Below, in pieces: positions 416 through 24,108 of a stretch of DNA of 64,000 nucleotides. The number at the start of each line of letters is the position of its first letter. Position 1 is the first letter of the stretch. A model generated the notes under the pieces. The model was not told the DNA's origin. It was given only the letters and a program-made list of their open reading frames with translations, and searched no databases. The stretch lies in the sequence record OP752703.1, one strand, 5' to 3'. A program made the position numbers and the translations under genes.

Positions 416-471
416 TGTTGACAATCCCTAGAAACCTGCTAATATACACACATCAACCACGGAGCTAGATC

Positions 472-744
472 ATGGATCAGAAAGTCATTACCCGAATCGC
501 AGTCATCCGCGCAATCGAAAGTCTGTTCGACGGGATCACCGACGACGATCATGCGTTGTTCGTGTTTGAAGTGATGGCCGAGTTCCCCGACGATCAGCGC
601 GTATCGGCCATTGACGTGAATGGCGCACAGGCAAAGTGGCTTTACAAGAGCTACCCGCTGCCCATGTTCAGGGAAGCCCTGAACAACCGCGTCACGGTGA
701 ATGCGGATACTGTCGCATTGAATCTGTTGGTAAATCAACTTTAA
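472..744 (+). CDS. Hypothetical early protein
   Basis: Cassette promoter and GGAG RBS. Confidence 0.85.
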   Translation: MDQKVITRIAVIRAIESLFDGITDDDHALFVFEVMAEFPDDQRVSAIDVNGAQAKWLYKSYPLPMFREALNNRVTVNADTVALNLLVNQL

Positions 745-807
745 AAAGTAGTTGACACCCGCCAGAAATCTGTTAATATACACACATCAACTACGGAGTA
801 ACTAAAA

Positions 808-1212
808 ATGGTCAAGTATCCCGAAGGTTCCAGCGATGAAATCCAGATGGAAGTCATCGCGTCTCTGCTGTTGAAGCTGAAAGCCATTTTCCCGACCAGC
901 GGTATTCGCGTAATTCAGCGCGTTTTCATTGGCGAAAGTAACATTCACATTCGTTACACCAATGCACGTACCGATGAAAATTGCATGGCAGGGTATTATG
1001 AAAATGACCCAGCTTACATGCTGTTTTCCATTGAATATGATGGCGAAGGCTTCTACATTGAAGCTCCGTCCACTCATTCCAATGTTCTAAAAAATGCCGG
1101 TGTCAAGTTCCGCAAGATCAAGGGCGCAACTGAAAAGGCATGTGCTGACAAGCTGGCCGCATGGTTCAAGAAAAATTCTGCGGAATTCCTGAAATTGGGC
1201 TTGTCTCGCTAA
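808..1212 (+). CDS. Hypothetical early protein
   Basis: Cassette promoter and GGAG RBS. Confidence 0.85.
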   Translation: MVKYPEGSSDEIQMEVIASLLLKLKAIFPTSGIRVIQRVFIGESNIHIRYTNARTDENCMAGYYENDPAYMLFSIEYDGEGFYIEAPSTHSNVLKNAGVKFRKIKGATEKACADKLAAWFKKNSAEFLKLGLSR

Positions 1213-1235
1213 TCGAACTAGGATAGAATACACAC

Positions 1236-1439
1236 ATGGATACCAAACTTTACAACGACTATAAGCAGGTCGAGAGCAATCCCCCGCCGCGTACACCCTC
1301 ACGACCCTTCCCGCCACAAGCGGGGGCAACCCCGGAACAATACCGCAAGTATGCGGATGAACTGGACAAGTACAATGCCGACGCTATCGTGTTTGCTGCA
1401 AAGCGCGATGAATGCGTGATAAGGCCCGTGAAGCGGTGA
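1236..1439 (+). CDS. Hypothetical Pro-rich protein, probably leaderless
   Basis: TTGTCT-17-TAGAAT-ACACAC-ATG. Confidence 0.75.
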   Translation: MDTKLYNDYKQVESNPPPRTPSRPFPPQAGATPEQYRKYADELDKYNADAIVFAAKRDECVIRPVKR

Positions 1440-1618
1440 TGGATTCCATCATTGAGGAATACTCCCGCTCCCCGTTCAAGCGCGAAACCATCAGTTATAT
1501 CCTGAACCATGCTGTGCATGCAACGGACAGCCTGACCGAAGCGGACGACATGATGATGGAGCTTGTCCAGCTTGTGCGCGACGTGATCGCTATCGAAAAG
1601 GGCGAACCTGTCCACTAA
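1439..1618 (+). CDS. Hypothetical protein (start moved from 1412)
   Basis: TGATG overlap with upstream stop. Confidence 0.7.
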   Translation: MDSIIEEYSRSPFKRETISYILNHAVHATDSLTEADDMMMELVQLVRDVIAIEKGEPVH

Positions 1619-1682
1619 AAACGCTTGACAAGGTGTGTGTAGCCCTGTAATCTACACACATCAACTCAACGGAGCAACACAG

Positions 1683-1775
1683 ATGGAAGACGCCGCAGAC
1701 CTCGCCTACATCAACGATATGGAAGCGAACGCTGAATACGCCAACTTTGATGCACAGGAATACGGGGAGGGTTAA
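1683..1775 (+). CDS. 30-aa acidic peptide MEDAADLAYINDMEANAEYANFDAQEYGEG
   Basis: Own cassette promoter and GGAG RBS; not in ORF track. Confidence 0.7.
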   Translation: MEDAADLAYINDMEANAEYANFDAQEYGEG

Positions 1776-1844
1776 CCTCCCCCGCTTGACAAACCAGAAA
1801 TAACCCCTATACTACACACACCAACCAACAAACCGGAGTCTAAA

Positions 1845-2123
1845 ATGTCCTACATCGTCAAGGTGAACGGTAAGACCACCACTGAAACCTCCTACAACGC
1901 CGCTGGTGCCACTGTCAAGGCTTCCGTGGCCCGTGTGGCTGCATCCCTGCGTGAACCGCTGCGCAAGGGCCTGTATCGATCCCCGAAGGCACAGACGCGA
2001 GCAAATGCCGAACGCCTGAACAGGGCTGTAAAGCTGGAAGCCGCCAAGGTCACGTTGCCCAAGGCCGCTGGCGATGCTTTCGGTAAGCTGCCCGGCTTCA
2101 CCTTCGCCATTGCCCGTCGATAA
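1845..2123 (+). CDS. Basic Ala-rich hypothetical protein
   Basis: Cassette promoter and GGAG. Confidence 0.85.
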   Translation: MSYIVKVNGKTTTETSYNAAGATVKASVARVAASLREPLRKGLYRSPKAQTRANAERLNRAVKLEAAKVTLPKAAGDAFGKLPGFTFAIARR

Positions 2124-2142
2124 GACGGGCTTTAGGGGTAGT

Positions 2143-2388
2143 ATGCTACTAAATCTAAATCATCAAGAAAACGCCCAGCGCGTAGCTATCGCAAACCGCC
2201 AGAAACTCTACCATACCGCATCCGCTGCGAAGGTGGGTGAGACTTGCAAGTGTCCAAGCTGTGTGCGAGAATTCGTTAAGAAATCGTATCAGCAAAAATT
2301 CTGCTCTAACAAGGGTGGTGGGAACTGCAAAGATACCTATTGGAATGCAGTAGACCCTAAGCGTGCTGGACGCGGTTTCATTCTCTAA
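2143..2388 (+). CDS. Putative zinc-finger protein
   Basis: CPSC...QKFCS...CKDTYWN; start moved to ATG 2143. Confidence 0.7.
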   Translation: MLLNLNHQENAQRVAIANRQKLYHTASAAKVGETCKCPSCVREFVKKSYQQKFCSNKGGGNCKDTYWNAVDPKRAGRGFIL

Positions 2389-2397
2389 AGGATTCCC

Positions 2398-2574
2398 ATG
2401 GAATACGAAAAAATCTCCCTGTCCCTTTCGCACTTTCAGGTGCAGGAAGCGATTAAGCAGCTAGTAAGGCAAGACTTCCCCGACCACTCTGTGGTTAATA
2501 TTAGCATCCGCGCAGATGGCGGTGCAAATGTGGAAGTCAAGAACCGCGAACCGCGATACAGTCAAAGGGATTGA
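2398..2574 (+). CDS. 58-aa hypothetical protein
   Basis: AAGGA RBS; TGA stop lies in next TTGACA. Confidence 0.7.
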   Translation: MEYEKISLSLSHFQVQEAIKQLVRQDFPDHSVVNISIRADGGANVEVKNREPRYSQRD

Positions 2575-2627
2575 CAGGCACTAAAAACCTGTTATAGTAC
2601 ACACATCAACTAAACCAAGGCATTCAA

Positions 2628-3419
2628 ATGTCCCGTATCGCCCGATCCGAACTGGCCCCACTCGCTGATGAAATCCGCCGCTTGATTGTGGAACGACTCG
2701 GGACAAGGGATGACTTCATGGTTACCCCTGCGGTGATCGCTGAACTGTTTGGCGACAACAATATTGATTCGTTCAATCTGCGTCAAGCACTTGAATGCCA
2801 CACCGGCAACGTGATGGCTCGCACGCCGCATTTCCTCGCCCACCTTCACGCTGCACTGGTAGCCAAGGGCCATGACCGTCTGAATCCGTATGAAATTAGC
2901 TCCTGTGATCGTCGCGTTTCGTTCATCGAAACGGTAGACCCCAAGGTTAAGCTATTGGCCTTTGAAAATCAAAACTTTACCTATATGGTACTGTTGAAGC
3001 CTGATATTCTGACAAAGTATGTCGGCGATAAGATCATGCAATATGAAATGCACGTCCGTGCCAGCACGCCAGCAGCGCCACAAAATCACTACCGCTACAA
3101 CAATCCGGGCATTAAGCGCGTCCCGTATGGTAACAAGCTGGCTAATGAATTCACCGACTATCACGGCTATTTCCGTTTTCTGGATTCACGTGATCGTGGG
3201 TTCGTTGGCTGCATCAAGCCTGAACAGTCTTACAAGGTCGCTGCGGACGGTAAATTCACTGACCGCGACGAAATCGTGTGGATCGGTAAGGATACAGTGG
3301 GTGCTATCTTTGGCGCTAGTGCCATACTGGATGAACTGAAAGCATATACCACCATGGCGGAAGAAACTTTTCAAGAATTGGAGTACAAAGTAGTTGACAA
3401 GGCCAGCGAAGGGGGCTAA
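2628..3419 (+). CDS. Hypothetical early protein
   Basis: 263 aa ORF with cassette promoter. Confidence 0.85.
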   Translation: MSRIARSELAPLADEIRRLIVERLGTRDDFMVTPAVIAELFGDNNIDSFNLRQALECHTGNVMARTPHFLAHLHAALVAKGHDRLNPYEISSCDRRVSFIETVDPKVKLLAFENQNFTYMVLLKPDILTKYVGDKIMQYEMHVRASTPAAPQNHYRYNNPGIKRVPYGNKLANEFTDYHGYFRFLDSRDRGFVGCIKPEQSYKVAADGKFTDRDEIVWIGKDTVGAIFGASAILDELKAYTTMAEETFQELEYKVVDKASEGG

Positions 3420-3450
3420 TATACACACATCAACTACGGAGTGACACGAA

Positions 3451-3603
3451 ATGAACGCTTGGAACCTGATTTCCTTCCTGCTGGTCGTCATCGCCCTGAT
3501 CGAAGCCTACCAGATGAATTGGGCGCGTCCGAAGTTCGTTAGCTGGGCAACCATTGCTGGCCTGTGGCTGGTCGGTTCCTTCGCACTGTGGCTGGTGTCC
3601 TGA
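3451..3603 (+). CDS. 50-aa two-helix membrane protein
   Basis: Cassette promoter; MNAWNLISFLLVVIALIEA...IAGLWLVGSFALWLVS. Confidence 0.75.
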   Translation: MNAWNLISFLLVVIALIEAYQMNWARPKFVSWATIAGLWLVGSFALWLVS

Positions 3604-3683
3604 TGCTCTACACTATCTGCAAGTGGTCGTATATCGGCCTTTGGATTGTTTGCATCGGCTGCGCAGTCTACCGCGTAATCTGA
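3603..3683 (+). CDS. 26-aa membrane peptide
   Basis: TGATG coupling; MLYTICKWSYIGLWIVCIGCAVYRVI. Confidence 0.55.
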   Translation: MLYTICKWSYIGLWIVCIGCAVYRVI

Positions 3684-3752
3684 TTTAAAAAAGGGGTTGC
3701 AATCGTAACCCCTCCCCTGTATACTACACACATACCAACCAAGGATTAAAAC

Positions 3753-4028
3753 ATGGCTCGTCTCGTTACTGGTGTCGTTCGTATTGAAAAGCGTTCGGTA
3801 GCCAAGCGCTTCCGCTCCACTGACGGCAACATGTATCATTCGGCTCTAGGTGCCAATATCCAGCAGAAGGCAATCAACCGGGCGAACGCTGCACGGGATA
3901 TTTTCGACCGTCTCGGCCTGACCATGCCCAGCAATAAAAACGTGGTGAGCATCAATCGCCTGATCGGTGTTCTGCGCCACAACCCGAAGGAAGCTGCGAA
4001 GTTTATCAAGCTTTTGCAGGAAGCGTAA
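3753..4028 (+). CDS. Basic hypothetical protein
   Basis: Hairpin promoter and AAGGA. Confidence 0.85.
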   Translation: MARLVTGVVRIEKRSVAKRFRSTDGNMYHSALGANIQQKAINRANAARDIFDRLGLTMPSNKNVVSINRLIGVLRHNPKEAAKFIKLLQEA

Positions 4029-4100
4029 CTAAATAAAACTGGACAAACAAGAGGCAGGGGGCTACAATCTCCTGCCTCAACTACTTTAAAGGAATCCAAA

Positions 4101-4238
4101 ATGCACAACCCCGTACACAAGCACAGCAAAAACATTAACAAGCCCAAAACGCACCGTGATCGTAAGAACGATTACAAGCGCAAAGACCGCAATAACAGGA
4201 ATGGTTCGGATGGAAGTTCGGACCATTTTTGTTTCTAA
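4101..4238 (+). CDS. 45-aa basic peptide
   Basis: AAGGA RBS; MHNPVHKHSKNINKPKTHRDRK. Confidence 0.65.
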   Translation: MHNPVHKHSKNINKPKTHRDRKNDYKRKDRNNRNGSDGSSDHFCF

Positions 4239-4299
4239 AGTGCTTGCATTCCTTTAAAGTCTGTCCTATACTACACGCACACTTTAAAGGAATACAAGC

Positions 4300-4587
4300 A
4301 TGCTTGATGAAGAATTTGGTTTTGAATTTGGTATTGGATTGGAGTTCGTTTCTCCTGCTGAATCCCTGCGCTACAGGGTTAATAAGCTCGAAACCATTCG
4401 TAACAAAATGCTTGAATGCTTGGAAAGCGCCAATGATGACCTTGCATCCATCGGGGTAGAATTGCAGTTCAATACTGCCATTGCGCATCCGTCCTACGAA
4501 ATCCATCTGATTGACGATCTTATCACAAAGCTGTCGGCTGAATTGGCAATCGAATCTCGCAAAGAAAAGCTTGCACAATCCGTTTAA
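4300..4587 (+). CDS. Acidic hypothetical protein
   Basis: TATACT-ACACGCAC and AAGGA. Confidence 0.8.
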   Translation: MLDEEFGFEFGIGLEFVSPAESLRYRVNKLETIRNKMLECLESANDDLASIGVELQFNTAIAHPSYEIHLIDDLITKLSAELAIESRKEKLAQSV

Positions 4588-4629
4588 ACCTGTATACTAC
4601 ACACATCAACCAACAACACGGAGTTAGCC

Positions 4630-5004
4630 ATGACCCTCAGCATCGCCACCGTCGAACGTCGCTTCACTTCCTTTGACGTGTACCTGAACGATAAGCTGAT
4701 CGACACCACTTTCCACCAAGGCGAGACGGTCGAGGATCAGAAGCGCTCGCTGATCGACCATGACGGCTATGATTCGGAAATCGAAGTCTACGGCGTGGCC
4801 GAATCGGTTCTCCCGCTGACAAAAAAGGAAATGCGTACCCTGCTGGAAGACGTGGGCGGCGAAGTGTTTCAGGACGTGGTGAGCTGGCATTGGCGCGATG
4901 ACACGGGCGCAAGCCTGCCGTTCCAGACCGAAAGCGATGCACTGGCCGATGCCGTCGAATCGCTGGGACTGGACACCAAGGGTATCGAGGATACCCGCCA
5001 GTAA
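4630..5004 (+). CDS. Hypothetical phage protein
   Basis: Cassette promoter; KRSLIDHDGY segment. Confidence 0.85.
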   Translation: MTLSIATVERRFTSFDVYLNDKLIDTTFHQGETVEDQKRSLIDHDGYDSEIEVYGVAESVLPLTKKEMRTLLEDVGGEVFQDVVSWHWRDDTGASLPFQTESDALADAVESLGLDTKGIEDTRQ

Positions 5005-5075
5005 AAAGATTTAAAAGGGGGTTGCAAAAGATCGTAACCCCCTGTATACTACACGCACACCACAAGGAAATCGCA

Positions 5076-5387
5076 ATGGACGTTGAAGCCCGCATTCGTG
5101 AATTCGCCGCCAAGCTGGAAGACTACTGCAATGCCGACCAGCCGGATTACCTGCAACAAAAGGTGACGATCATCACTGGCAAGAAGTATGTAAAGATTGC
5201 CATTGGTTATGTCAAGAGTGAAGGCCGCAGCGTCTATTGTTTCATTGACCAGAGCAACGGCGATATTTACAAGGCCGCAAGCTGGAAGGCCCCGGCCAAG
5301 GGTGTGCGCGGTTCGATCTTTAACGATAACTGCGACGTGGGTGACGACAAGCCCTGCAATCGATTCGGGAGCGGATTGTACCGCTAA
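5076..5387 (+). CDS. Conserved phage protein (GKKYxKI...GDIYKAASWKAPAK type)
   Basis: Motif recalled from many large phages; start moved to 5076. Confidence 0.8.
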   Translation: MDVEARIREFAAKLEDYCNADQPDYLQQKVTIITGKKYVKIAIGYVKSEGRSVYCFIDQSNGDIYKAASWKAPAKGVRGSIFNDNCDVGDDKPCNRFGSGLYR

Positions 5388-5427
5388 AACAGTTGACATA
5401 GGGTTCAAGTAGAATTAAACTGAACAC

Positions 5428-5649
5428 CTAACGTAATCCCATCAACGAGAAACGATACCACTAAGGGGGTTGGAAAGTATGTAACGGTTAAACTTAATTT
5501 TACTCTATCTTATTAAATTAATCTTGTATACTTAAACGCAACACCGTAACATTGTAAACCACGTTAGCAGCAGGGAGCGCCCATAAAAGCAACGCTAACA
5601 TAACATCGTAAACCACGGCCCGCTAGTGAGTTCACCTAGCGGGCTTTTT
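5428..5649 (+). ncRNA. Candidate non-coding RNA of about 220 nt
   Basis: TTGACA(5393)-17-TAAACT(5416); no usable ORF; terminator 5618-5649. Confidence 0.55.
5618..5649 (+). terminator. Intrinsic terminator
   Basis: GCCCGCTAG-N9-CTAGCGGGC-TTTTT. Confidence 0.88.
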
Positions 5650-5783
5650 CGTGTCTAATCAATGACTTAGCGGGATATATCCCCGGCCTACCATCCATTT
5701 TACAGCAAATATAATTTAATGCAAGGGGTTGCAATGAAATAAAATAGGCGTATACTACACACATACCAACAACGGAGCTACAC

Positions 5784-6008
5784 ATGAACACCATTCGCGT
5801 CGATACCAACAATGCCAAGTGCGCCCCGTGCGGGATGAATTCGATTCGCTATATCGGTGACAACATGGCTGCGGCCCGTCGCGCTTTCGACAATGCTACG
5901 GTCGGCATTGATGCGTGGGGTAAGGCTAATCCGGCCTATGGTATCGTCCTGTCGAAGTGGGATCGATCCAAAAACGATTATGTGGTGATTGATAGCAAGG
6001 GCTTGTAA
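5784..6008 (+). CDS. Hypothetical early protein
   Basis: Cassette promoter and GGAG. Confidence 0.85.
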   Translation: MNTIRVDTNNAKCAPCGMNSIRYIGDNMAAARRAFDNATVGIDAWGKANPAYGIVLSKWDRSKNDYVVIDSKGL

Positions 6009-6057
6009 TTCTCAAAGACTGCTGTATACTACACACATACCAACCACGGAGTTACAC

Positions 6058-6162
6058 ATGAACAACCAAGGCACCCTTGAAGAACGTTACGCGATCTATC
6101 TGGCCTGCGCAAAGGATTTGGGTTGGCAGATCAAGACTTTCGATGAATGGTTGAATAGTTGA
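6058..6162 (+). CDS. 34-aa peptide
   Basis: Cassette promoter and GGAG; stop inside next TTGACA. Confidence 0.7.
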   Translation: MNNQGTLEERYAIYLACAKDLGWQIKTFDEWLNS

Positions 6163-6216
6163 CACAAGCCAAAATCCTGTTATACTAACCACACACACAC
6201 TAACAAGGAAGCACGA

Positions 6217-6984
6217 ATGCCCATCACCGATAACGCTACTGTCATTCTCACCGACGCGGACGGCAACCGTTTCCGCGCAAGCATGGAACAGGCCAACGCA
6301 CTGGCCGCAATGGAACAGGCCAACAAGGGTGGCTTTGCTACCATCATCGGTTATCAGCCGTCAAGCGACTACGTGGTTAAGCCGCTGCACGATTATCAGG
6401 TCATCACCCGTTTTGACTATGGTCGCCTGAACAACCGTAAGCGCGATGCACTGGAAGGTATCACGTGGAATCAGGTTAAGGATGAAATTCTGGCCCTGCC
6501 CAAGGTGATCGAACTGGTCAAGGCCAAGGGTGAAGAACACGTGCGCGGCATTTTCAACGAACGCAAGGCAAAGGAACTGGACAGCATCCACGTTTCGGCA
6601 ATGGGCGACCGTTCCGATGCACACCGACAGGGCCATGATCGTTGCTATGGCCGCATTGTCGAAGGTGTCCGCGTTCATTACAAGACTGAAAAGGTTGACG
6701 GCATCATGCAGCCGGTGTTCACTGATGGACTGCCTACCGCTGATTCCATCATGTTGAACGTGCTGATCCTGAGCCGTAACGTGCGTGAACCGGGTGAACG
6801 TAAGGTAGTGAACAGCGGCGTTCCAGTGCTTATCTCCAACGTCCTGAAAAAGCAGATGAACAGCCGCAGCGTGGGTTTCAAGGCACTGAGCTTGAAGCCG
6901 GGCAATTTTGAAGAAGTGCGTATGGGCGGTGTCACCCTGAACGAAGCTGACACGGCCCGACTCGGCGACCTGCTGATTCTGTAA
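6217..6984 (+). CDS. Hypothetical early protein
   Basis: 255 aa, cassette promoter, AAGGA. Confidence 0.88.
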   Translation: MPITDNATVILTDADGNRFRASMEQANALAAMEQANKGGFATIIGYQPSSDYVVKPLHDYQVITRFDYGRLNNRKRDALEGITWNQVKDEILALPKVIELVKAKGEEHVRGIFNERKAKELDSIHVSAMGDRSDAHRQGHDRCYGRIVEGVRVHYKTEKVDGIMQPVFTDGLPTADSIMLNVLILSRNVREPGERKVVNSGVPVLISNVLKKQMNSRSVGFKALSLKPGNFEEVRMGGVTLNEADTARLGDLLIL

Positions 6985-7003
6985 CCGATCAGCCTAACAG
7001 AAA

Positions 7004-7027
7004 GCCCTAGAGAAATCTAGGGCTTTT
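7004..7027 (+). terminator. Intrinsic terminator, identical to 12879-12902
   Basis: GCCCTAGA-GAAA-TCTAGGGC-TTTT. Confidence 0.88.
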
Positions 7028-7099
7028 TTAATTCAAAAAGTGCTTGACAGGGCATTACCTAGGCCCCATAATACACGCATCAACTACGGAGCAAACCAC

Positions 7100-7541: not shown

Positions 7542-7594
7542 CAATCCCTAAAATCCCTGTATACTACACACATACCAACCACATGAGGCACACC

Positions 7595-10733: not shown

Positions 10734-10745
10734 TATAGTACACGC

Positions 10746-16773: not shown

Positions 16774-16845
16774 TTAGTTTTAAAAAGGGGTTGCCAAGTG
16801 CAGCCCCTTTTTGTTATAGTACACGCATCAACCACGGAGATATAC

Positions 16846-17298: not shown

Positions 17299-17369
17299 AG
17301 TTTTAAAAAGGGGTTGCCAAGTGCAGCCCCTTTTGTTATAGTACACACATCAACCACGGAGCGCCCGCC

Positions 17370-17639
17370 ATGCTGAACATGACCTTTGAAGAAGCCAAGG
17401 CCCACGCAAACGAACTGTACGCCAAGCTCAATGAATGCAGTGCTGCCCTGAACAAATACCCGAAGGGCGATATGGGCATGGTGGCCGAATCCATCCGCAT
17501 GACCCCCGAATACAAGGCAGAAACCGCTGCATTCCGTAAGGTGTTCGAGGAACTGCGCCAGTTTAACACGGTGTATGTCAAGCAATTCAAAAAAGAATTG
17601 CGTGAGGAACGTGCAAAGAAATACGCACAAACCCCTTGA
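17370..17639 (+). CDS. Helical hypothetical protein
   Basis: Hairpin promoter; stop in TTGACA. Confidence 0.85.
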   Translation: MLNMTFEEAKAHANELYAKLNECSAALNKYPKGDMGMVAESIRMTPEYKAETAAFRKVFEELRQFNTVYVKQFKKELREERAKKYAQTP

Positions 17640-17689
17640 CAGGGGACGCGCTGTACTCTACTATACACGCATCAACCACGGAGCAAGCC

Positions 17690-17917
17690 ATGAAACCCAT
17701 GTTCGTACATGATTGCGACTGCTGCAAGCACCTTGGCACTGTGCTTGTGGCGGGTGAGTATCATGACCTGTATGCCCATCCCAATGGCATCCTAGGGACC
17801 ACTCTGGTGGCTCGTTGGAGCGACAATGGCCCTGACTATGAGTCTGCCCCTGTCCAGTACATCACCGACCTCCACAATCCCCCGTTACGCATGGCTCTTA
17901 TCGCCTACAAGGCTTAA
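17690..17917 (+). CDS. Hypothetical protein (HDCDCC)
   Basis: Cassette promoter and GGAG. Confidence 0.82.
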   Translation: MKPMFVHDCDCCKHLGTVLVAGEYHDLYAHPNGILGTTLVARWSDNGPDYESAPVQYITDLHNPPLRMALIAYKA

Positions 17918-17953
17918 AAAAGCGCCAGATCGTTACCACCATTGTGACATACA

Positions 17954-17989
17954 CAAACTCCCCAAGTCAATAGATTTGGGGAGCAAAAT
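17954..17989. repeat. 36-bp element identical to 14411-14446
   Basis: Direct comparison. Confidence 0.9.
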
Positions 17990-18071
17990 AATTTAAAAAA
18001 AGTGTTGACAAGAGTCCATAAGGGGCGTATTCTACACACATCAAGTCAACACCAACCCAACGGAGCAACCC

Positions 18072-18293
18072 ATGAACTACGTCGCCACCAACACCGCCAA
18101 CGCCGCCTCCTACGTCGCTCAGGCTGAAAGCAACATCGAACTGGTCGCTACTGGTCTGGACGCTGGCGCAAAGCACTTCTACAACAACGAAGGCCGCTAC
18201 ATCGGCACCCGCTTCACGGACGGCTCTGCAATCACCCCGACCCATGGCGGTGGCTGTGTGGAATTCCTCAGCACCTTCGCACAGGAGGGCTAA
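18072..18293 (+). CDS. Hypothetical early protein
   Basis: Cassette promoter and GGAG. Confidence 0.85.
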   Translation: MNYVATNTANAASYVAQAESNIELVATGLDAGAKHFYNNEGRYIGTRFTDGSAITPTHGGGCVEFLSTFAQEG

Positions 18294-18303
18294 GGAGTCA
18301 AGA

Positions 18304-18333
18304 GGGAGGGGCTATGGCCTCTCCCTTTATTTT
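18304..18333 (+). terminator. Intrinsic terminator
   Basis: GGGAGGGGC-TATG-GCCTCTCCC-TTTATTTT. Confidence 0.8.
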
Positions 18334-18363
18334 AAGGTAGCTATTCCCCCGTCCTTCCATCCC

Positions 18364-18392
18364 ATTTTATATTATAATTTAGCGCGAGTCAA
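18364..18392 (-). promoter_or_regulatory. Antisense sigma70-like promoter
   Basis: TTGACT-17-TAAAAT on - strand. Confidence 0.7.
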
Positions 18393-18471
18393 CAACAAAA
18401 TTAATTAAAATAATGCTTGACAAGTCGCGCGCTGTACCCTAATATACACACATCAACCACGGAGACACACC

Positions 18472-18708
18472 ATGAACTATCTCGCCATTGGTCCGTACTG
18501 CTGGGGTAAGGGTTCCACCCGTAAGGAAGCCGTTGATAAGGCAAAGGAGAATTTCCCGCACTCCTACTTCCCCAGCGTCAAGCGTGTGGCTGACAAGCAT
18601 TTCAGCATCTACACCAGCGAGGGCGTGTTCACTGTCGATGGCATGGGGGATATTCAATCCACCGCTAACGATATTGTCAAGGTCCAGAAATCGATTCTGG
18701 CTGATTAA
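18472..18708 (+). CDS. Hypothetical early protein
   Basis: Cassette promoter and GGAG. Confidence 0.85.
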   Translation: MNYLAIGPYCWGKGSTRKEAVDKAKENFPHSYFPSVKRVADKHFSIYTSEGVFTVDGMGDIQSTANDIVKVQKSILAD

Positions 18709-18777
18709 TCAGCCAAGGGGGTTGACAATCCAGTCAGCCCCCTTTACTATACACACATCAACCACGGAGACGCACAC

Positions 18778-18984
18778 ATGAAGTTTCTGGATTTTGGCGG
18801 CGAACCGATCAACGTCAAGCTGGCTGCGCAGTTCACCTACAAGGGCCTGACCATTTCCGCCTCCACCATCTTCACCCCCTACGCCTCCATTGCCATTCTG
18901 GATGCTGAGGGTGAATTCCTCGCTACCGATCTGAACAGCGTGGAAGAAGCCATCGCCCTGATCGACAATGGCACGGTGGGTTGA
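18778..18984 (+). CDS. Hypothetical early protein
   Basis: Hairpin promoter; stop in TTGACA. Confidence 0.85.
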   Translation: MKFLDFGGEPINVKLAAQFTYKGLTISASTIFTPYASIAILDAEGEFLATDLNSVEEAIALIDNGTVG

Positions 18985-19038
18985 CACAAACCCACTGACC
19001 AGTTAAACTAACACACATCCACTCACCATAGGAACACC

Positions 19039-19662
19039 ATGACCGCTATCCTGCTATCCGCCACCCCGACCCAGCGTAAAAACCTGCTGCAACTGGTCGG
19101 CTACCTCATGTCGATTCAGAACACGCCCAAGGCTGATGAATACGACCATAGCGACGAAGAACGCTGCACTTTCGGCTTCGCTGTCCTGAGCAAAAAGATC
19201 AAGGCTCTGAACGCACGTTTCATGGTTACTGGCGTGGGCCGAAGCTATGTGAAGCGTGCCAAATACAACGGTATCGCTTTATCCGAACTGGCTAATGCTG
19301 TGTTCGGTAAGGACTACTGGTCACGAATCGTTTACGGCCCGTATACCAGCAGCAGCGCACGCGCCTTCGCGGAAATCAAAGACCTTCCGAAGGGCCGCGA
19401 GCAGATGAATTTCATCATCAACGCCATGATTTCCGCATACAAGATGACCCCGGAAGAACTGGCCCCGTACAAGGAAAGTGTCACCATCATCACCAATGAA
19501 GTGGACACGACCCGTAATCGCATTCTGGACCGCATTACCAAGCTGGAAGCTTTCGTGAACTACGCCAGTGCGTTTGATAATGATGACACCATCAAGCTGA
19601 CCCAGCAAGTGCAGGCCGCACAGGCTGACATTAAGGCGCTGAAACGCGCACTGTCCCTGTAA
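19039..19662 (+). CDS. Paralog family A, member 4
   Basis: YDHS..CTFGFA, VFGKDY. Confidence 0.88.
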   Translation: MTAILLSATPTQRKNLLQLVGYLMSIQNTPKADEYDHSDEERCTFGFAVLSKKIKALNARFMVTGVGRSYVKRAKYNGIALSELANAVFGKDYWSRIVYGPYTSSSARAFAEIKDLPKGREQMNFIINAMISAYKMTPEELAPYKESVTIITNEVDTTRNRILDRITKLEAFVNYASAFDNDDTIKLTQQVQAAQADIKALKRALSL

Positions 19663-19734
19663 TTAGTTTAAAAAGGGGGTTGCAGAAATGCAGCCCCTTT
19701 GCTATTCTACACACATCAACTACGGAGACGCATC

Positions 19735-19923
19735 ATGTTCGCAGCTACCAGTTCCAAAGTAATCGACCAGTGGGGTGATGGCAGGTATGGTGCTGTCTTC
19801 TGGCGTACTGATCGCCGCGACGTGTGGTATTGCTATGACGGCCATTACAGCTATCAGGCTGTGGTGGATGAATTCGGCAACCTGATCTGTATCTCTCACT
19901 ACACCAATGAGGCAGGTTACTAA
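19735..19923 (+). CDS. Hypothetical early protein
   Basis: Hairpin promoter and GGAG. Confidence 0.8.
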   Translation: MFAATSSKVIDQWGDGRYGAVFWRTDRRDVWYCYDGHYSYQAVVDEFGNLICISHYTNEAGY

Positions 19924-20075
19924 TGTGTACCTCTGACTGTAACTATCTGAACTGCTGTGACTGTGGTGGCAATGGCTGCGGTTGCTCTGGCTGCTGGTCC
20001 TGTCAAGCCTGTGAAGAATGCAAGTGGGAAAATGGCGAGTGTGATGATTGTAAGGAGGAATCCGATGGAGTTTGA
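19923..20075 (+). CDS. 50-aa Cys-rich metallothionein-like peptide
   Basis: MCTSDCNYLNCCDCGGNGCGCSGCWSCQACEECKWENGECDDCKEESDGV; TAATG coupling; not in track. Confidence 0.72.
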   Translation: MCTSDCNYLNCCDCGGNGCGCSGCWSCQACEECKWENGECDDCKEESDGV

Positions 20076-20325
20076 ATTCCAGACAATCCACCGCGTCTGT
20101 TTCAGTTGCACCACGAACGGCGATGCAGCAGACGACTACAATGATGCCCTTGTGAGGCTCGCAAAGCAATTCAGTACAGTCTACTTCAATAACGATAGCC
20201 GTTACATGTGGAAATGGTGCTGGATTTTTGAGTGCGAAAACAGGGACACCCTGAACGAAATTCTTAAAGCGGCAACCGTCCTAGCAGACATGCAAGGGGT
20301 TGTACTCACCAACGAACTAGGCTAA
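20065..20325 (+). CDS. Hypothetical protein (start moved from 19957)
   Basis: AAGGAGG RBS before ATG 20065. Confidence 0.78.
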   Translation: MEFEFQTIHRVCFSCTTNGDAADDYNDALVRLAKQFSTVYFNNDSRYMWKWCWIFECENRDTLNEILKAATVLADMQGVVLTNELG

Positions 20326-20354
20326 GATACACACATCAACCACGGAGACATACC

Positions 20355-20708
20355 ATGTTCGCTATCGTGATGCTTGGCAAGAACAACGAAATCCGCTCCT
20401 TCGCATACTATGACCCCGACTGTGGTCACATGATGAGCCGCTACACCACTCCCGGTTCTGGTCTGGTCGGTGCAAAGTTCTTCCCCACCCGTGAAGCTGC
20501 GCAGACTGTGTATGATGGAATGCGTAAGGAACGCGTGAACGAATACAGCGACGGTTCCACCACTCCCCCGATGCACATCTGGCAGGGCCTCCAAATCTGC
20601 AACGACAATCCGAAGGATGAAGGCACTTTTGCCATTGTCGAACTGTCGTGGGCCGTGGTCGAATCCGTACATGTGCAGGGGGAATTGACCTCCTGCAAAC
20701 ATCGCTAA
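20355..20708 (+). CDS. Hypothetical early protein
   Basis: Cassette leader and GGAG. Confidence 0.82.
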   Translation: MFAIVMLGKNNEIRSFAYYDPDCGHMMSRYTTPGSGLVGAKFFPTREAAQTVYDGMRKERVNEYSDGSTTPPMHIWQGLQICNDNPKDEGTFAIVELSWAVVESVHVQGELTSCKHR

Positions 20709-20720
20709 GGAGCTTAACAT

Positions 20721-20927
20721 ATGTTTTACAAATTCATTGACGCCCTGTGGTCGTTCGGCCTGCGCTGGTTCCCGCCACTCATGGTGCTGAATTTCATACT
20801 CTGCACGCACAAGATTGTGGTAGACGGCTTTAAGGTCAGCCATGTGGTGCTGTGGATTCTGGCTGTATTCTATCTCACCATGTGGTGTGATCGTAACTCC
20901 GAATTCATAAAAGAAATGGAGAAATAA
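20721..20927 (+). CDS. Two-helix membrane protein
   Basis: AAGGAG RBS; two hydrophobic segments. Confidence 0.78.
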   Translation: MFYKFIDALWSFGLRWFPPLMVLNFILCTHKIVVDGFKVSHVVLWILAVFYLTMWCDRNSEFIKEMEK

Positions 20928-21007
20928 TCGCTCAAAAGTGTTGACGGGTGGGCGGTAACTCTTTAATATACACACATCGAGTCACCACCCACCCAACGGA
21001 GAACACC

Positions 21008-21280
21008 ATGAGCAACGTCACCAACTTCCTCGCCAACGTCGCCGCTGCTGAGAAGATTGTGCAGGCCAACCACAAGGCTAGCTGGGATTGGGCCGCTTCT
21101 GATCGTGCCACCCGTGGCCCCTCCCCGCGTCTGGAAAAGGGTGCTGATACTGTGACCATGGGCAACGTCTCCTGCAAGCTGTCTGCCCCCGCTCAGAATG
21201 CTCGCACCAACGCCTGCCGCCGCAACTGGAAGATCAACGGCAAGCGTGCAACTGAGGCGGAAGCTCTGGCCGCACTCTAA
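21008..21280 (+). CDS. Ala-rich basic hypothetical protein
   Basis: Cassette promoter and GGAG. Confidence 0.83.
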   Translation: MSNVTNFLANVAAAEKIVQANHKASWDWAASDRATRGPSPRLEKGADTVTMGNVSCKLSAPAQNARTNACRRNWKINGKRATEAEALAAL

Positions 21281-21350
21281 ATCTTAAAAAAGGGGGTTGG
21301 CAAGAGCCAGCCCCCTTGCTATACTACACACACCATCAACGGAAACCATC

Positions 21351-21725
21351 ATGAGCGCTCACACCATCCCCACCACCCCCGTCGAAGTGCTGGATCGTAC
21401 CATCGCCCTGCTGTCCGACCCCGCCAACTGGACTACTGACTACTTCGCACGTAATGCAAAGGGTCAGGACGTTGACGTTCGTTCGCCCGATGCTACCTGT
21501 TTCTGCATCATGGGCGCAATTGAGCGTGTCACCCGTGGACCGGAAAATGGCGAGCGCGTCACGATGGAACAAATCCATACCGAATGTGATGCGGAAGCCG
21601 CATTGCAGACCATTCTAACCAAGCGCATTGGTGATTCCAACATCGCCAATTTCAACGACTCGGCAAGCCATGAACAGGTGATCGAAGCCCTGACCGAAGC
21701 AAGGGATAGCATCAAAAGGGCTTGA
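21351..21725 (+). CDS. DUF6197-like protein, copy 1
   Basis: NWT...CFCIMGAI...NFND...VIEAL. Confidence 0.65.
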   Translation: MSAHTIPTTPVEVLDRTIALLSDPANWTTDYFARNAKGQDVDVRSPDATCFCIMGAIERVTRGPENGERVTMEQIHTECDAEAALQTILTKRIGDSNIANFNDSASHEQVIEALTEARDSIKRA

Positions 21726-21775
21726 CCCCCTTACCGCATACCCCTATAATACACACACCATCAACGGAAACCATC

Positions 21776-22243
21776 ATGAGCGCCATCGATAACCTGAACA
21801 CCAAGCCGGTCAAGGAAATTCTCACGAACGTTCGTGAGCGTTTCTCCAATCGCACCAACTGGCAAACCAGTTCCCTGAGCAATCACCGTGGTTGCATGTG
21901 CCTGCTGGGCGGTATGTCCGTGGCTGAGGGCATCGTCACTGCTGACGATTATATCAAACACTATAATGGAGAAACGGATAGCCTTACCATTGGCGAGTTC
22001 CCCAACCAAGCAGCCATCTACAAGGCCATGGCTGACAGTCGCGCACTGCAATTCCTGATGGATGACATTGCGACCGAAAACAAAAACATCGCTCTCGCCA
22101 TCGAGGCCGATAAGGATGGACTGCACTACGTAGACGCCGCATGGACCTTCAATGACGGCCATGACAGGCCCGGTGAGCGTGATAAGGAAAAGAGCTATAA
22201 CCGCGTGCTGGATGCTCTGGATCGAGCCATCGCAAAGGCTTGA
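21776..22243 (+). CDS. DUF6197-like protein, copy 2
   Basis: NWQ...CMCLLGG...TFND...VLDAL. Confidence 0.62.
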   Translation: MSAIDNLNTKPVKEILTNVRERFSNRTNWQTSSLSNHRGCMCLLGGMSVAEGIVTADDYIKHYNGETDSLTIGEFPNQAAIYKAMADSRALQFLMDDIATENKNIALAIEADKDGLHYVDAAWTFNDGHDRPGERDKEKSYNRVLDALDRAIAKA

Positions 22244-22295
22244 CCATCTGAAACAATGTGGGTATGATACACACATACCCACTCAGGCCATAACC

Positions 22296-22511
22296 ATGAA
22301 CAAAACCAAGGCGAACAAATTCCTAGAGGCCAAAGGCTTTGATATGGAAGTTGACAAGTTCGAGGGCATCTGGTTCATGGTCAACGCCTACAGGGGATAC
22401 GGTCAACCCATCCGTAGCACGGAAGGCTCTTGCATGAATATCGTTCGCATGAGTGATATGACTGAATCCGATCTGCTATACTACGCCAATAAACTCGCTA
22501 AGGAAGACTAA
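22296..22511 (+). CDS. Hypothetical early protein
   Basis: Cassette promoter. Confidence 0.78.
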   Translation: MNKTKANKFLEAKGFDMEVDKFEGIWFMVNAYRGYGQPIRSTEGSCMNIVRMSDMTESDLLYYANKLAKED

Positions 22512-22514
22512 GCC

Positions 22515-22715
22515 ATGAACCTACAGCAGCAGAATTTCCCGAAATACGTTATCGTACATAGCGAAATCGGTAACGAACTGACCAGTCCCTTGACTCTCGA
22601 AGAAGTCAACAACGGCTCACAGGCATATCCCGCCATCAAGGCCCGTTCCCTGCGCATCGGCGAAACCCTGAAAAGCACCCTCGACCATGATCGAGAAATT
22701 CGCCGCGTAAGCTAA
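22515..22715 (+). CDS. Hypothetical protein
   Basis: AAGGA upstream. Confidence 0.78.
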   Translation: MNLQQQNFPKYVIVHSEIGNELTSPLTLEEVNNGSQAYPAIKARSLRIGETLKSTLDHDREIRRVS

Positions 22716-22781
22716 AAAACACTTGACGATTACTCAGTGGGTATGTACTATACACATACCCACTCACTAAGGAGCTACGCC

Positions 22782-22991
22782 ATGAACAACCTCTACTGCG
22801 CAACCCACAAGGACGAAAACCTTGACTCGTTGCAGGGCGAGCGTTTGGATGCCATGACCGATCACATGGTCAAGCATAAGGCGTATGATTTCAACACCCT
22901 CAATGACTCCGCCAGTGGTAACTACGTCATTTGGGAAATGGTCCGTAAGGCAGACGGTCACTACTACTTCCACCATATCATGGGGCGATAA
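22782..22991 (+). CDS. Hypothetical early protein
   Basis: Cassette promoter and AAGGAG. Confidence 0.8.
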   Translation: MNNLYCATHKDENLDSLQGERLDAMTDHMVKHKAYDFNTLNDSASGNYVIWEMVRKADGHYYFHHIMGR

Positions 22992-23065
22992 TTCTTAAAA
23001 AGGGCTTGCCAAGTGCAAGCCCTTTTGCTATTCTACACACATACCCACTCACTAAGGAAACGACC

Positions 23066-23437
23066 ATGGAACTGCATCCGTCGATCACTCTCCCCTTCAT
23101 TGAGTACGTGTGCAAGTCCGTCCACAACAACGATACCGACGACCTCGCCAGCGACTACTGCGACCGCCATAAGGACGCCTATGGCATCAAGGCCCGTTGG
23201 GTGTTCTCCCGTACCTATACCGTCAATGAATGGCTCGTCATGTTCTCGGGCCTCGCCTACGCCATCGATGCAGAGTGCGAACGCGAGGAAGCCGAACAGA
23301 AAGCATTCATGGAACGTATCGCTTCCGTGGGCCTTACCGCATGGGCCGAGCGCAACAACATCCGCTCGGAATATGATCTGATGGAACACAACCAAATCAA
23401 TGAGTACAGGATGCTTGACCGTGGGGAAGTGCGCTAG
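23066..23437 (+). CDS. Phage protein (DxHKDAYGIKxR type)
   Basis: Hairpin promoter and AAGGA. Confidence 0.82.
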   Translation: MELHPSITLPFIEYVCKSVHNNDTDDLASDYCDRHKDAYGIKARWVFSRTYTVNEWLVMFSGLAYAIDAECEREEAEQKAFMERIASVGLTAWAERNNIRSEYDLMEHNQINEYRMLDRGEVR

Positions 23438-23468
23438 TATACTACACACACCATCACGGAAAACCATC

Positions 23469-23822
23469 ATGAACCAGATTAACCCTGAATTCGGACGTAA
23501 GCTGTTCGACGCCATGGCTGACACCCTCTATAAGGACCGTAGCCGACTGGCCTACATCATCACCGTGTCGCCCTCGCAGGCTAACACCCTCTACCTGCGC
23601 GCTACCCGTGACGTACAGTGTGCGCCCCTCCTGCATCATATCTCCAATGGCATGACCGCCGCAACCATCTGCATCCGCTATGAGGATATGGCTCTCCTGC
23701 GCACGGCCATCATTCAGGAGAATGACGCTACTCGACGCAACGGCCATACGCCAGCCCAGCACATGGTTGACATTGACACCATGCTTGCCATCGCATACCA
23801 GACAACTAACACCATCGACTAA
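23469..23822 (+). CDS. Hypothetical early protein
   Basis: Cassette promoter and CGGA. Confidence 0.8.
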   Translation: MNQINPEFGRKLFDAMADTLYKDRSRLAYIITVSPSQANTLYLRATRDVQCAPLLHHISNGMTAATICIRYEDMALLRTAIIQENDATRRNGHTPAQHMVDIDTMLAIAYQTTNTID

Positions 23823-23884
23823 ACCTCTTGCACCCTAGGGTATGTCCCTGTATACTACACACATACCCTCAAAGGAGATAACAC

Positions 23885-24052
23885 ATGAATGTAATGCACA
23901 ACATAGAGCGCATCAATGGCCGCTGGGTAGGCTATGACTCCAAGGGACAGGCCCACCGCATCAGTGGCAATACACATAGTGGATACATTGTAAAGGGTAA
24001 GTCGTTCAAGTATCTACGTAGTGTGTCAGAATACCTCTACACTGTAGCATAG
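23885..24052 (+). CDS. 55-aa protein, last cassette
   Basis: Cassette promoter and AAGGAG; not in track. Confidence 0.72.
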   Translation: MNVMHNIERINGRWVGYDSKGQAHRISGNTHSGYIVKGKSFKYLRSVSEYLYTVA

Positions 24053-24073
24053 CATACACACCACAGCTATGCA

Positions 24074-24108
24074 AGGGGTTGACATACACTCAGCCCCTAT
24101 GCTACCAT
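24074..24108 (+). promoter_or_regulatory. Orphan hairpin promoter with no downstream gene
   Basis: AGGGGTTGA-N7-TCAGCCCCT; TTGACA-18-TACCAT. Confidence 0.6.

Follow-up and report, generated by a model that had tools for sequence, protein, structure and literature searches.

Repeated promoter-leader elements as probable early expression units and recombination sites in the small-gene block of Stenotrophomonas jumbo phage RAS14

The small-gene block of RAS14

The DNA analyzed here (hereafter the window) is a stretch of 64,000 nt, corresponding to positions 1-64000 of the 319,635-bp genome of Stenotrophomonas phage RAS14 (OP752703.1), and it includes a block of small genes in which a compact element composed of a sigma70-type promoter, a short leader and a Shine-Dalgarno (SD) sequence recurs in front of unrelated genes. 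We regard it as likely that this block is the immediate-early region, of the host-takeover type, of a jumbo phage related to XacN1, and that its 49 repeats serve both as expression units for the host sigma70 RNA polymerase and as sites of recombination. A literature search found no paper on RAS14 or on phage CM1 (OP883945.1), which is the RAS14 genome with a different start point, and none describing these elements.

The block runs on the plus strand from RAS14 position 318320 through the record origin to 24,052 (~25.3 kb) and comprises 74 annotated coding sequences (CDSs), all on the plus strand. The record as assembled in full carries 117 identical nucleotides at both ends, which indicates that it is a circularised assembly with an arbitrary origin. 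The block starts at a divergent junction (~318,000-318,350), i.e. ~1.2 kb before the record origin; the original prediction, which let it begin at position 418, has to be corrected in this respect, as three further elements lie at 318320, 318768 and 318944. The GC content of the block is 0.51, compared to 0.40 in the neighbouring sequence. Across the junction lies an arm coded on the minus strand, with 29 tRNA genes identified by ARAGORN and ~35 in the record annotation (L003 15997-41546, corresponding to RAS14 ~285.6-311.2 kb). Within the window, the extent of the block is as follows:

1-24108, plus strand: part of the block within the window (the full block ends at ~24052)
24053-24419, no strand assigned: non-coding terminal part of the block; both the GC content and the coding strand change here

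The repeated elements

The elements were identified with a two-block position weight matrix (PWM), comprising a -35 block, a spacer of 16-18 nt and a block of the -10 with 10 nt of leader, which was run over both strands of the whole genome with a cut-off of 14 bits. On the plus strand, 58 matches scored at least 14 bits, of which 55 are located in the block (318320..23851); without offset duplicates they correspond to 49 distinct elements (14-40 bits in the two-block model), all on one strand and in one block. Outside the block, the genome contains three weak matches on the plus strand and six on the minus strand, five of the latter in the tRNA arm and with a different leader. The spacing of the elements has a median of 449 bp (mean 522, range 156-1717 bp), so that the predicted succession of promoter, leader and small gene about every 450 bp is borne out. 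The leader sequence proposed in the original prediction (ACACACATCAACYACGGAG) was found with up to 3 mismatches 19 times, exclusively on the plus strand between 446 and 20347 (0.02 matches expected), and the 12-mer ACACACATCAAC with up to 1 mismatch 27 times, all on the plus strand in the block, with no match elsewhere in the genome and none antisense. An independent scan of 1-20000 reported 59 sigma70-like sites, compared to 21.2 +/- 5.9 in shuffled sequences. An element of their own, 12-44 nt upstream, precedes 46 of the 74 CDSs, while the remaining 28 follow another gene without a promoter. The arrangement GGAG-N5-9-ATG is 8-fold more frequent in the block (1.49 per kb) than elsewhere (0.18 per kb).

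The elements found by the PWM scan are given below in window coordinates ("plain" denotes absence of a hairpin; hairpin energies are in kcal/mol; all are on the plus strand, indicated by +):

405-474, +: element, -10 at 440, predicted +1 at 452, ATG 472; terminator-type hairpin 385-420 just upstream
739-810, +: element, -10 at 774, predicted +1 at 786, ATG 808; plain
1189-1238, +: element, -10 at 1224; ATG 1236 at predicted +1 (putatively leaderless)
1613-1685, +: element, -10 at 1648, predicted +1 at 1660; implied ATG 1683
1773-1847, +: element, -10 at 1808, ATG 1845; hairpin just upstream
2558-2630, +: element, -10 at 2593, ATG 2628; plain
3382-3453, +: element, -10 at 3417, ATG 3451; plain
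3685-3755, +: element, -10 at 3720, ATG 3753; hairpin around -35 (-14.7)
4232-4302, +: element, -10 at 4267, ATG 4300; plain
4558-4632, +: element, -10 at 4593, ATG 4630; plain
5010-5078, +: element, -10 at 5045, ATG 5076; hairpin around -35 (-18.5)
5381-5446, +: weak element (17 bits), -10 at 5416; leader unlike the others; not followed by an ORF, enters the ORF-free stretch 5388-5783
5716-5786, +: element, -10 at 5751, ATG 5784; plain
5990-6060, +: element, -10 at 6025; implied unannotated ORF from ATG 6058 to 6162
6146-6219, +: element, -10 at 6181, ATG 6217; plain, variant leader
7032-7102, +: element, -10 at 7067, ATG 7100; plain
7525-7597, +: element, -10 at 7560, ATG 7595; plain
8484-8559, +: element, -10 at 8519, ATG 8557; hairpin around -35 (-16.4)
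9058-9127, +: element, -10 at 9093, ATG 9125; plain
10033-10101, +: element, -10 at 10068, ATG 10099; plain, structure-free in fold control
10699-10748, +: element, -10 at 10734; ATG 10746 at predicted +1 (putatively leaderless)
11518-11588, +: element, -10 at 11553, ATG 11586; hairpin around -35 (-19.0); 95-97% identical to the 16815 and 17337 copies
12044-12115, +: element, -10 at 12079, ATG 12113; hairpin around -35 (-12.8)
13761-13838, +: weak element, -10 at 13796, ATG 13836
13954-14024, +: weak element, -10 at 13989, ATG 14022
14461-14530, +: element, -10 at 14496, ATG 14528; plain; the gene behind has a XacN1 homolog
14755-14823, +: element, -10 at 14790, ATG 14821; hairpin (-21.7); site of a two-gene insertion in variants
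15031-15105, +: element, -10 at 15066, ATG 15103; hairpin over spacer and -10
15719-15787, +: element, -10 at 15754, ATG 15785; hairpin (-20.7); shares 98% identity over 52 nt with the 19703 copy
16139-16215, +: element, -10 at 16174, ATG 16213; plain
16780-16848, +: element, -10 at 16815, ATG 16846; hairpin (-20.4); variant deletion 15962|16829 with right breakpoint in leader
17302-17372, +: element, -10 at 17337, ATG 17370; hairpin (-19.0)
17624-17692, +: element, -10 at 17659, ATG 17690; extra 69-aa gene directly behind leader in variants
17993-18074, +: element, -10 at 18028, ATG 18072; plain, long leader
18405-18474, +: element, -10 at 18440, ATG 18472; plain
18710-18780, +: element, -10 at 18745, ATG 18778; hairpin (-21.9); two cassettes inserted in leader in variants
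19668-19737, +: element, -10 at 19703, ATG 19735; hairpin (-20.4); g19735 missing in all variants
20288-20357, +: element, -10 at 20323, ATG 20355; replacement 20020|20327 with right breakpoint at the -10/leader edge
20929-21010, +: element, -10 at 20964, ATG 21008; g21008 replaced in variants
21285-21353, +: element, -10 at 21320, ATG 21351; hairpin (-24.6); the g21008 replacement has its right edge here
21710-21778, +: element, -10 at 21745, ATG 21776; deleted with g21776 in variants
22228-22298, +: element, -10 at 22263, ATG 22296; partner in the 21727|22228 join
22711-22784, +: element, -10 at 22746, ATG 22782; lost in variants (deletion 22511|22989)
22994-23068, +: element, -10 at 23029, ATG 23066; hairpin (-19.0); right edge of deletion 22511|22989
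23403-23471, +: element, -10 at 23438, ATG 23469; variant replacement/deletion with left breakpoint 23450 in leader
23816-23887, +: last element, -10 at 23851, ATG 23885

The alignment of the elements on the -10 reveals the consensus aaaGGGG-TTGACA, a spacer of 17 nt (16-18), TATACT (TATAMT), ACACAC, ATCAACYAC, GGAG, 6-8 nt and ATG. The leader is 20-26 nt long, poor in G and rich in C and A, and is followed by a GGAG or AAGG SD sequence before the ATG. An A-tract at approximately -30 to -28 relative to the start of the -10 reaches 0.6-0.7 bits, and TTTAAAAA precedes most of the units with a hairpin. In the spacer the information content is ~0 bits, but each position of the -10 hexamer and of the next 8 nt contributes 1-2 bits, which is a strong indication that the part past the -10 is under selection of its own, beyond shared ancestry of the copies. 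In the standard geometry of sigma70 promoters the start site is found just past a discriminator of 6 nt after the -10; ACACAC would then correspond to the discriminator and the next A to the predicted +1. The annotated ATG codons at 1236, 10746 and RAS14 318780 are situated exactly 6 nt after the -10, i.e. at the predicted +1, which supports the predicted start site; these three genes are probably expressed from leaderless mRNAs. The same placement of the ATG at +1 was found in XacN1 (L009 26047 and 29144). The element model also suggests that the CDS 1635-1775 more probably starts at ATG 1683 than at the annotated GTG 1635, and that a 34-aa ORF (6058-6162) behind element 6025 is probably missing from the annotation, in which case the opposing minus-strand CDS 6052-6165 appears doubtful.

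Some of the copies are almost identical over long distances, as had been noticed in the original prediction: those at 11513, 16776 and 17297 share 95-97% identity over 62-65 nt, and those at 15727 and 19676 share 98% over 52 nt. Self-comparison of the block revealed 48 repeat pairs, all in intergenic elements and none extending more than 8 nt into a CDS. The near-identical copies agree even in the unconstrained spacer, while the genes that flank them are unrelated, which calls for recent copying of elements or conversion between them. A segmental duplication of genes together with their promoters was excluded as the source of the repeats, given that the similarity ends within 8 nt of the CDS and that the sole paralogous family in the block (g12271, g15103, g16213 and g19039) displays only ~30% protein identity. 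An origin from transposons or MITE-like sequences was excluded as well: the copies are co-oriented and in register with the start codon, and they exhibit neither target duplications nor terminal inverted repeats other than the hairpin.

Hairpins

A stem of 8-14 pairs (AAAAGGGGTTGC ... GCAGCCCCTTTT) was identified in 14 elements, and two more have such a hairpin just upstream (~15 of 49 overall); the other ~34 are plain promoters. Thirteen of the hairpins have their stem at approximately -31 to -2, with the -35 hexamer (TTGCNN) in the 5' arm and loop and a T-tract in the promoter spacer, whereas the fourteenth (-10 at 15066) covers the spacer and the -10. Folded as RNA, the 13 hairpins have energies of -12.8 to -24.6 kcal/mol, and none of 200 shuffled sequences was as stable; three plain elements used as a control revealed no structure. 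Element 23029 exhibits a compensatory change from G:C to C:G relative to 11553. By analogy to the promoter-early stem-loop (PeSL) units of T4-type phages (the nt-1 stems of the type A3-4G3-loop-C3T3-4 and the tested stem of RB49; see below), the hairpins probably attenuate or terminate transcripts arriving from upstream, which would make these elements combined terminator/promoter units. With two thirds of the elements lacking a hairpin and 28 genes lacking a promoter, overlapping transcripts are nevertheless probable.

Codon usage

The block differs from the rest of the genome in its codon usage. GC3 is 0.62 in the block and 0.43 in long ORFs elsewhere, and among the Leu codons CTG and CTA account for 53% and 7% in the block versus 7% and 49% in the rest. 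The codons avoided in the block (CTA, AGA, TCA, ACA, GTA, CCA and GGA) match the tRNAs that the phage itself encodes (Leu-TAG, Arg-TCT, Ser-TGA, Thr-TGT, Val-TAC, Pro-TGG and Gly-TCC, respectively). This split fits a scenario in which translation of the block would depend on host tRNAs until those of the phage accumulate, and the host-type codon usage thereby provides indirect support for predicted immediate-early expression.

Natural variants of the block

Natural variants were obtained from the contigs of four public runs mapped on 19000-24999 and from contigs retrieved from JGI, ENA and Logan by exact-protein look-up; the former exhibited deletions and replacements of the size of genes. Where aligned, they are 94-98% identical to RAS14. 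Within 12.2-24.1 kb (11.9 kb) we distinguished 12 indel or replacement events, 10 of which have one or more breakpoints in the range -45..+36 around a -10; 14 of the 24 breakpoints are located in element windows, which make up 16% of the sequence (P = 2.5e-6). The outcome that, according to the original prediction, would have refuted the idea, i.e. indel breakpoints in relatives unrelated to the elements, was not observed. The distal block has experienced ~1 event per kb, compared to 0.2 per kb in the adjacent array of small genes (2 in 10 kb).

Three events have their switch point within the conserved core or flanking element copies. A two-gene insertion at element 14790 has a copy of the element on each side, and the switch occurs inside TATACTACACACATCAAC. 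The leader of element 18745 received two extra cassettes (inside ACACACATCAACCACGGAG), both with an element of their own. Element 21745 was deleted together with g21776 by an in-register join of two -35 regions (21727|22228), which share AAAGGCTTGACC. Single genes were gained or lost directly behind the leader at 17690 and 19735, and in all variants the joint that results from the loss of g19735 coincides with the last G of GGAG (19727|19923). Several replacements extend from a leader to the edge of the hairpin or the -10 of the next element. In two events no element takes part: g13267 was lost precisely (13264|13431), and the N-terminal part of g12271 is divergent. Of the 12 events, some demonstrate homologous exchange between elements, and for most it is plausible; this exchange is one route of gene turnover in this region among others.

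The DUF6197 family (21351-22243) is present in two adjacent copies in RAS14 and in three in most variants (L129-L134), a difference which indicates that the family expands and contracts within the array.

Relatives of RAS14

The nearest relative of RAS14 is Xanthomonas phage XacN1, whose ORF001-063 constitute a homologous block of small ORFs on one strand that adjoins a tRNA arm, as in RAS14. It exhibits the promoter grammar of the RAS14 block, leaderless cases included, in front of unrelated genes; unlike in RAS14, the downstream motif is looser, mostly TATAAT-AAACACA. Homologs in XacN1 were found for 13 of the 74 RAS14 block proteins (36-61% identity, order partly rearranged) and 61 have none. 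In XacN1 the ORF block and the tRNA arm form a direct terminal repeat (DTR) of 66 kb, and the unique length of the genome is 318,795 bp (PMC5852040), which is approximately the length of RAS14. By analogy, a terminal position is probable for the RAS14 block as well, which would make it the first to enter the cell; sequencing depth falls at ~24.1 kb in one run, which is only suggestive. The authors of the XacN1 genome group this phage with SCTP-2, Atu_ph07 and phages of the Rak2 type, distant from T4 (PMC5852040), and a few T4-like annotations, e.g. RnlA and rIIA/B, are found in the RAS14 record. The word "promoter" has no occurrence in the XacN1 paper (PMC5852040) and none in the paper on RsoM2USA, another relative of RAS14 (PMC8504454).

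IMG/VR searches with the proteins g2628, g6217 and g23066 found no relatives. A scan of IMG/VR with the exact leader returned one contig of 316.8 kb (first 1.7 kb examined), while a looser DNA pattern returned mostly single chance matches together with ~10 loci with dense arrays of 9-17 units each. The grammar of the latter is TTGACA-N17-TATAAT-ACAYACAT, a CA-rich leader, AAGGAG and ATG. The dense-array loci have no proteins in common with RAS14 and no DNA match among cultured phages; their nearest cultured relatives, according to a T4 NrdC.10-like protein, are the PA5oct-like jumbo phages of Pseudomonas. Eight IMG/VR loci that carry such arrays in front of genes unrelated to those of RAS14 (L022, L029, L046, L050, L062, L069, L107 and L112) lie on contigs of 20-221 kb (size available for six of the eight). 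A dense array is absent from PA5oct, the first 50 kb of which contains only 4 matches to the RAS14 element model. PA5oct has early genes in its DTR, its growth is sensitive to rifampicin, and TTGAC/TATAATA promoters were found around its transcription start sites (PMC7318152).

Other features of the block and its surroundings

In the ORF-free stretch 5388-5783, a canonical terminator (5617-5649) follows a weak sigma70-like promoter whose -10 is at 5416. The stretch may encode a non-coding RNA (ncRNA) of ~220 nt, like those reported in the DTR region of PA5oct (PMC7318152). The predicted fold of 5428-5725 is no better than that of shuffled sequences (z = -0.92), and the segment has no Rfam match; more generally, Rfam at gathering thresholds reported no match in 1-26000.

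A second intergenic repeat, which is not a promoter, is present at 14411-14451 and 17954-17994 (97.6% identity). The repeat is made up of a hairpin (CTCCCCAA-N9-TTGGGGAG) followed by an A/T-rich tail, and each copy is positioned upstream of a plain promoter (14496 and 18028, respectively). It may represent a separate terminator.

The non-coding end of the block (24053-24419, 367 nt) contains 11 same-strand ACCAT repeats, 10 of which are spaced by 11-13 nt (24235-24373); the genome-wide rate of ACCAT on both strands is 3.4 per kb. Many small indels distinguish the variants in this stretch, which may represent an end used in packaging, the boundary of a terminal repeat or an origin. The adjoining array on the minus strand (24420-34000) comprises genes of ~60-90 aa with a GC content of 0.40 and has no elements. 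Weak hints of family membership in the block concern DUF1737, DUF7717, Kyano_Gp96 and Phage_T4_Y00F.

The tRNA arm includes two suppressor-type tRNAs with the anticodons TTA and CTA (L003 32793-32867 and 36693-36768, corresponding to RAS14 ~302.4 and ~306.3 kb). It also contains a few near-consensus sigma70-like promoters on the minus strand (RAS14 290639, 291794, 306955, 314834 and 315834), with leaders that are C/A-rich but unlike the leader of the block. These promoters suggest that early transcription may be divergent from the ~318.1 kb junction.

Comparison with known systems

The RAS14 block is a PeSL-like system outside the lineage in which PeSLs were defined. PeSLs are known from the T4-type phages RB49/phi1, PST/T4 and nt-1/KVP40, with 51 units in the RB49 genome, 52 in that of phi1 and a density of 8 in ~5 kb, and their promoter and terminator activity as well as the formation of mini-circles were shown experimentally (PMC2839356, PMC4122927). 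Both systems combine an A/T-rich tract, a stem of the GGGG...CCCC type over or near the -35/-10 (in RAS14 in ~15 of 49 units), a near-consensus sigma70 promoter, an SD sequence and the ATG of an ORFan; the formula of the nt-1 stem matches the RAS14 hairpins, and in both cases the position of the G/C stem relative to the promoter is variable. Both have ~50 units per genome, up to ~2 per kb, where gene content varies, and in both, indels and replacements between close relatives occur at the units, with a unit copy on either side of insertions. RAS14 differs from the PeSL phages in being a XacN1-like jumbo phage rather than a member of Tevenvirinae, in having its units in one contiguous single-strand block instead of several hyperplastic regions, in the presence of a stem-loop in only ~1/3 of the units, and in a strongly conserved discriminator and 5' leader, which have not been described for PeSLs. 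Moreover, its block is an island of codon usage and GC content, and the promoter and terminator activity of its units is predicted. The array had been predicted to be very large, which is an overstatement: with 49 units it is comparable to RB49 and phi1, and what sets it apart is the single contiguous block.

The host-takeover module of Bacillus phage SPO1 and the pre-early (first-step-transfer) region of coliphage T5 consist of small early genes located in a long terminal repeat and are the first to enter the cell; all or nearly all of these genes have strong host-type promoters and strong ribosome-binding sites. The RAS14 block resembles them in its many small genes of unknown function, host-type promoters and ribosome-binding sites. 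Its 49 promoters are several-fold more numerous, however, and its terminal location is a prediction by analogy to XacN1. Homology to either region at the sequence level was not seen, although no search aimed at it was made. SPO1 is mentioned in the XacN1 paper (PMC5852040). The 39-kb DTR of PA5oct is similar in that it belongs to a jumbo myovirus and combines small early genes with sigma70-type promoters (PMC7318152), but 32 promoters were reported for the whole PA5oct genome (PMC7318152), and a dense array is absent from its first 50 kb.

Proposed mechanism and alternatives

According to the mechanism we propose, the sigma70 RNA polymerase of the host would read the 49 compact units. Transcription would start at the A after ACACAC and produce a structure-free AUCAACYAC leader, followed by GGAG and a small gene, and in three units, with the ATG at +1, it would yield a leaderless mRNA. 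In ~15 units a GGGG...CCCC hairpin with A- and T-tracts over or before the -35 would attenuate the transcripts from upstream. With copies of one 25-65 bp sequence spaced at ~450 bp and all in one orientation, the general homologous recombination of the phage could cross over between them, so that whole cassettes of gene and signals would be deleted, inserted or swapped. Such swaps would spare the neighbours and keep the gene content of the block in rapid flux. The repeat family and its confinement to the block, its position-specific conservation, the stability of the hairpins, the host-type codons and the cassette-sized indels of natural variants with switches within repeats are observed. We infer the use of the host RNA polymerase, the start site, the early timing, the termination and the terminal, first-injected location.

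Several observations weigh against this interpretation. The breakpoints exhibit no enrichment in elements beyond that expected for intergenic sequence, as 21 of the 24 lie at gene edges and 73% of the non-coding sequence is element. Gene-precise indels without an element occur in the block (13264|13431) as well as outside of it (loss 24648|24864, replacement 28295|28674). The region 3.4-12.3 kb (8.8 kb, 16 elements) is free of indels in the variant compared, and some joints of k=31 contigs at repeats are ambiguous, being possible assembly chimeras, and were excluded from the count of events. As to termination, the hairpin stems are followed by only 3-4 T, and a scan for canonical terminators revealed no enrichment (19 found, 23.3 expected); the scan does not call the element hairpins because fewer than 5 T follow the stem. 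Finally, none of the 20 minus-strand genes located past 24.4 kb has a homolog in XacN1 306-321 kb, where the DTR junction is located, and the placement of the RAS14 block in a terminal repeat is therefore only an analogy. The idea of a PeSL-like shuffling platform, put forward in the original prediction, is thus supported by the architecture and by the breakpoints in relatives, but it is qualified by the lack of enrichment beyond intergenic sequence, by the element-free indels and by the 16 elements without any. Likewise, to call the units independent cassettes was too strong: 28 of the 74 genes have no element, two thirds of the elements have no hairpin, terminators are not enriched, and read-through is likely.

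The first three of these observations would be expected if the repeats were expression signals only, with illegitimate recombination taking place anywhere and selection retaining the events at gene boundaries; their link with the elements would then follow from the fact that elements occupy the intergenic sequence. We consider this explanation unlikely, albeit worth keeping in mind, since it does not account well for the three events with flanking copies, switches in a core of 18-20 nt or an in-register join (9-18 nt shared), for the 95-98% identity of some copies beside unrelated genes (52-65 nt, spacer included), or for the difference between ~1 event per kb in the distal block and 0.2 in the adjacent array.

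The conservation of 8 nt past the -10 to the same degree as the -10 itself, next to a free spacer, could alternatively indicate that ACACAC/AUCAACYAC-GGAG is a control site for a joint shut-off of the early genes, e.g. an operator of a repressor or a target of an RNA-binding protein or an endoribonuclease. T4 RegB cuts GGAG in early messages, and GGAG-type SD sequences are, as described above, 8-fold more common in the block than elsewhere; in addition, the core is common to RAS14, XacN1 and unrelated uncultivated phages. On the other hand, no regulator was found among the 10 largest block proteins, which have no informative Pfam or PHROG match, and the genome contains no antisense copy of the leader. 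A pyrimidine at -1, followed by A at +1 and by a C/A-rich leader free of structure, can be expected to give efficient initiation and translation with no additional factor. A control site thus appears rather improbable to us; it could also act in addition to the expression and recombination functions proposed here.

The block is reminiscent of integron arrays in its small single-gene cassettes arranged in one direction and in its short repeated sites with hairpin potential. A dedicated, integron-like system of site-specific gene capture, with the elements as its sites, would be in line with cassette-sized insertions exactly at the core and with the conserved GGGG...CCCC stem, for which the authors of the PeSL studies suggested a stem-binding recombination protein (PMC2839356). 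Nonetheless, we find such a system very unlikely: precomputed Pfam matches and scans identified no integrase or recombinase family among the block products, the attI/attC organisation is missing, each cassette has a promoter of its own, the crossovers vary in position (-35, -10/leader, ATG), which would be expected of an exchange driven by homology, the hairpin is absent from two thirds of the elements, and indels without elements occur.

In phiKZ-group jumbo phages the phage's own enzyme transcribes the early genes, yet the suggestion that an RNA polymerase encoded by the phage or carried in the virion reads the RAS14 promoters instead of the host sigma70 holoenzyme is hardly credible. The motif corresponds to the textbook sigma70 consensus with a spacing of 17 bp, the RAS14 annotation lists no RNA polymerase, in RsoM2USA one was likewise not found (PMC8504454), PA5oct is rifampicin-sensitive (PMC7318152), and the codon usage of the RAS14 block is of the host type.

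Implications

We speculate, as a distinctly doubtful extension of the homologous exchange proposed above, that the -10/ACACAC/AUCAAC core could be a lineage-spanning cassette junction preferred by phage recombination machinery, and that the terminal early region could act as a gene-capture platform between unrelated phages. If so, ready-to-express cassettes would be exchanged among unrelated phages of the same hosts, and the captured genes would be kept in host-type codons and would work before the phage tRNAs are made.

The element model mends several gene calls and could be used to find early regions in contigs of uncultivated phages. The block can be regarded as a catalogue of ~75 probable candidates for host-takeover or anti-defence functions, each with a predicted promoter, start and ribosome-binding site, which would be easy to clone and to screen in Stenotrophomonas or Xanthomonas. 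The sharp separation in codon usage, matched to the set of phage tRNAs, offers a testable case of timing-dependent codon adaptation. The PeSL concept, in which a regulatory cassette is at the same time a recombination linker, would be extended by the RAS14 elements beyond the T4-like phages to the XacN1/RAS14 jumbo phages, with support from natural variants rather than from one pair of isolates.

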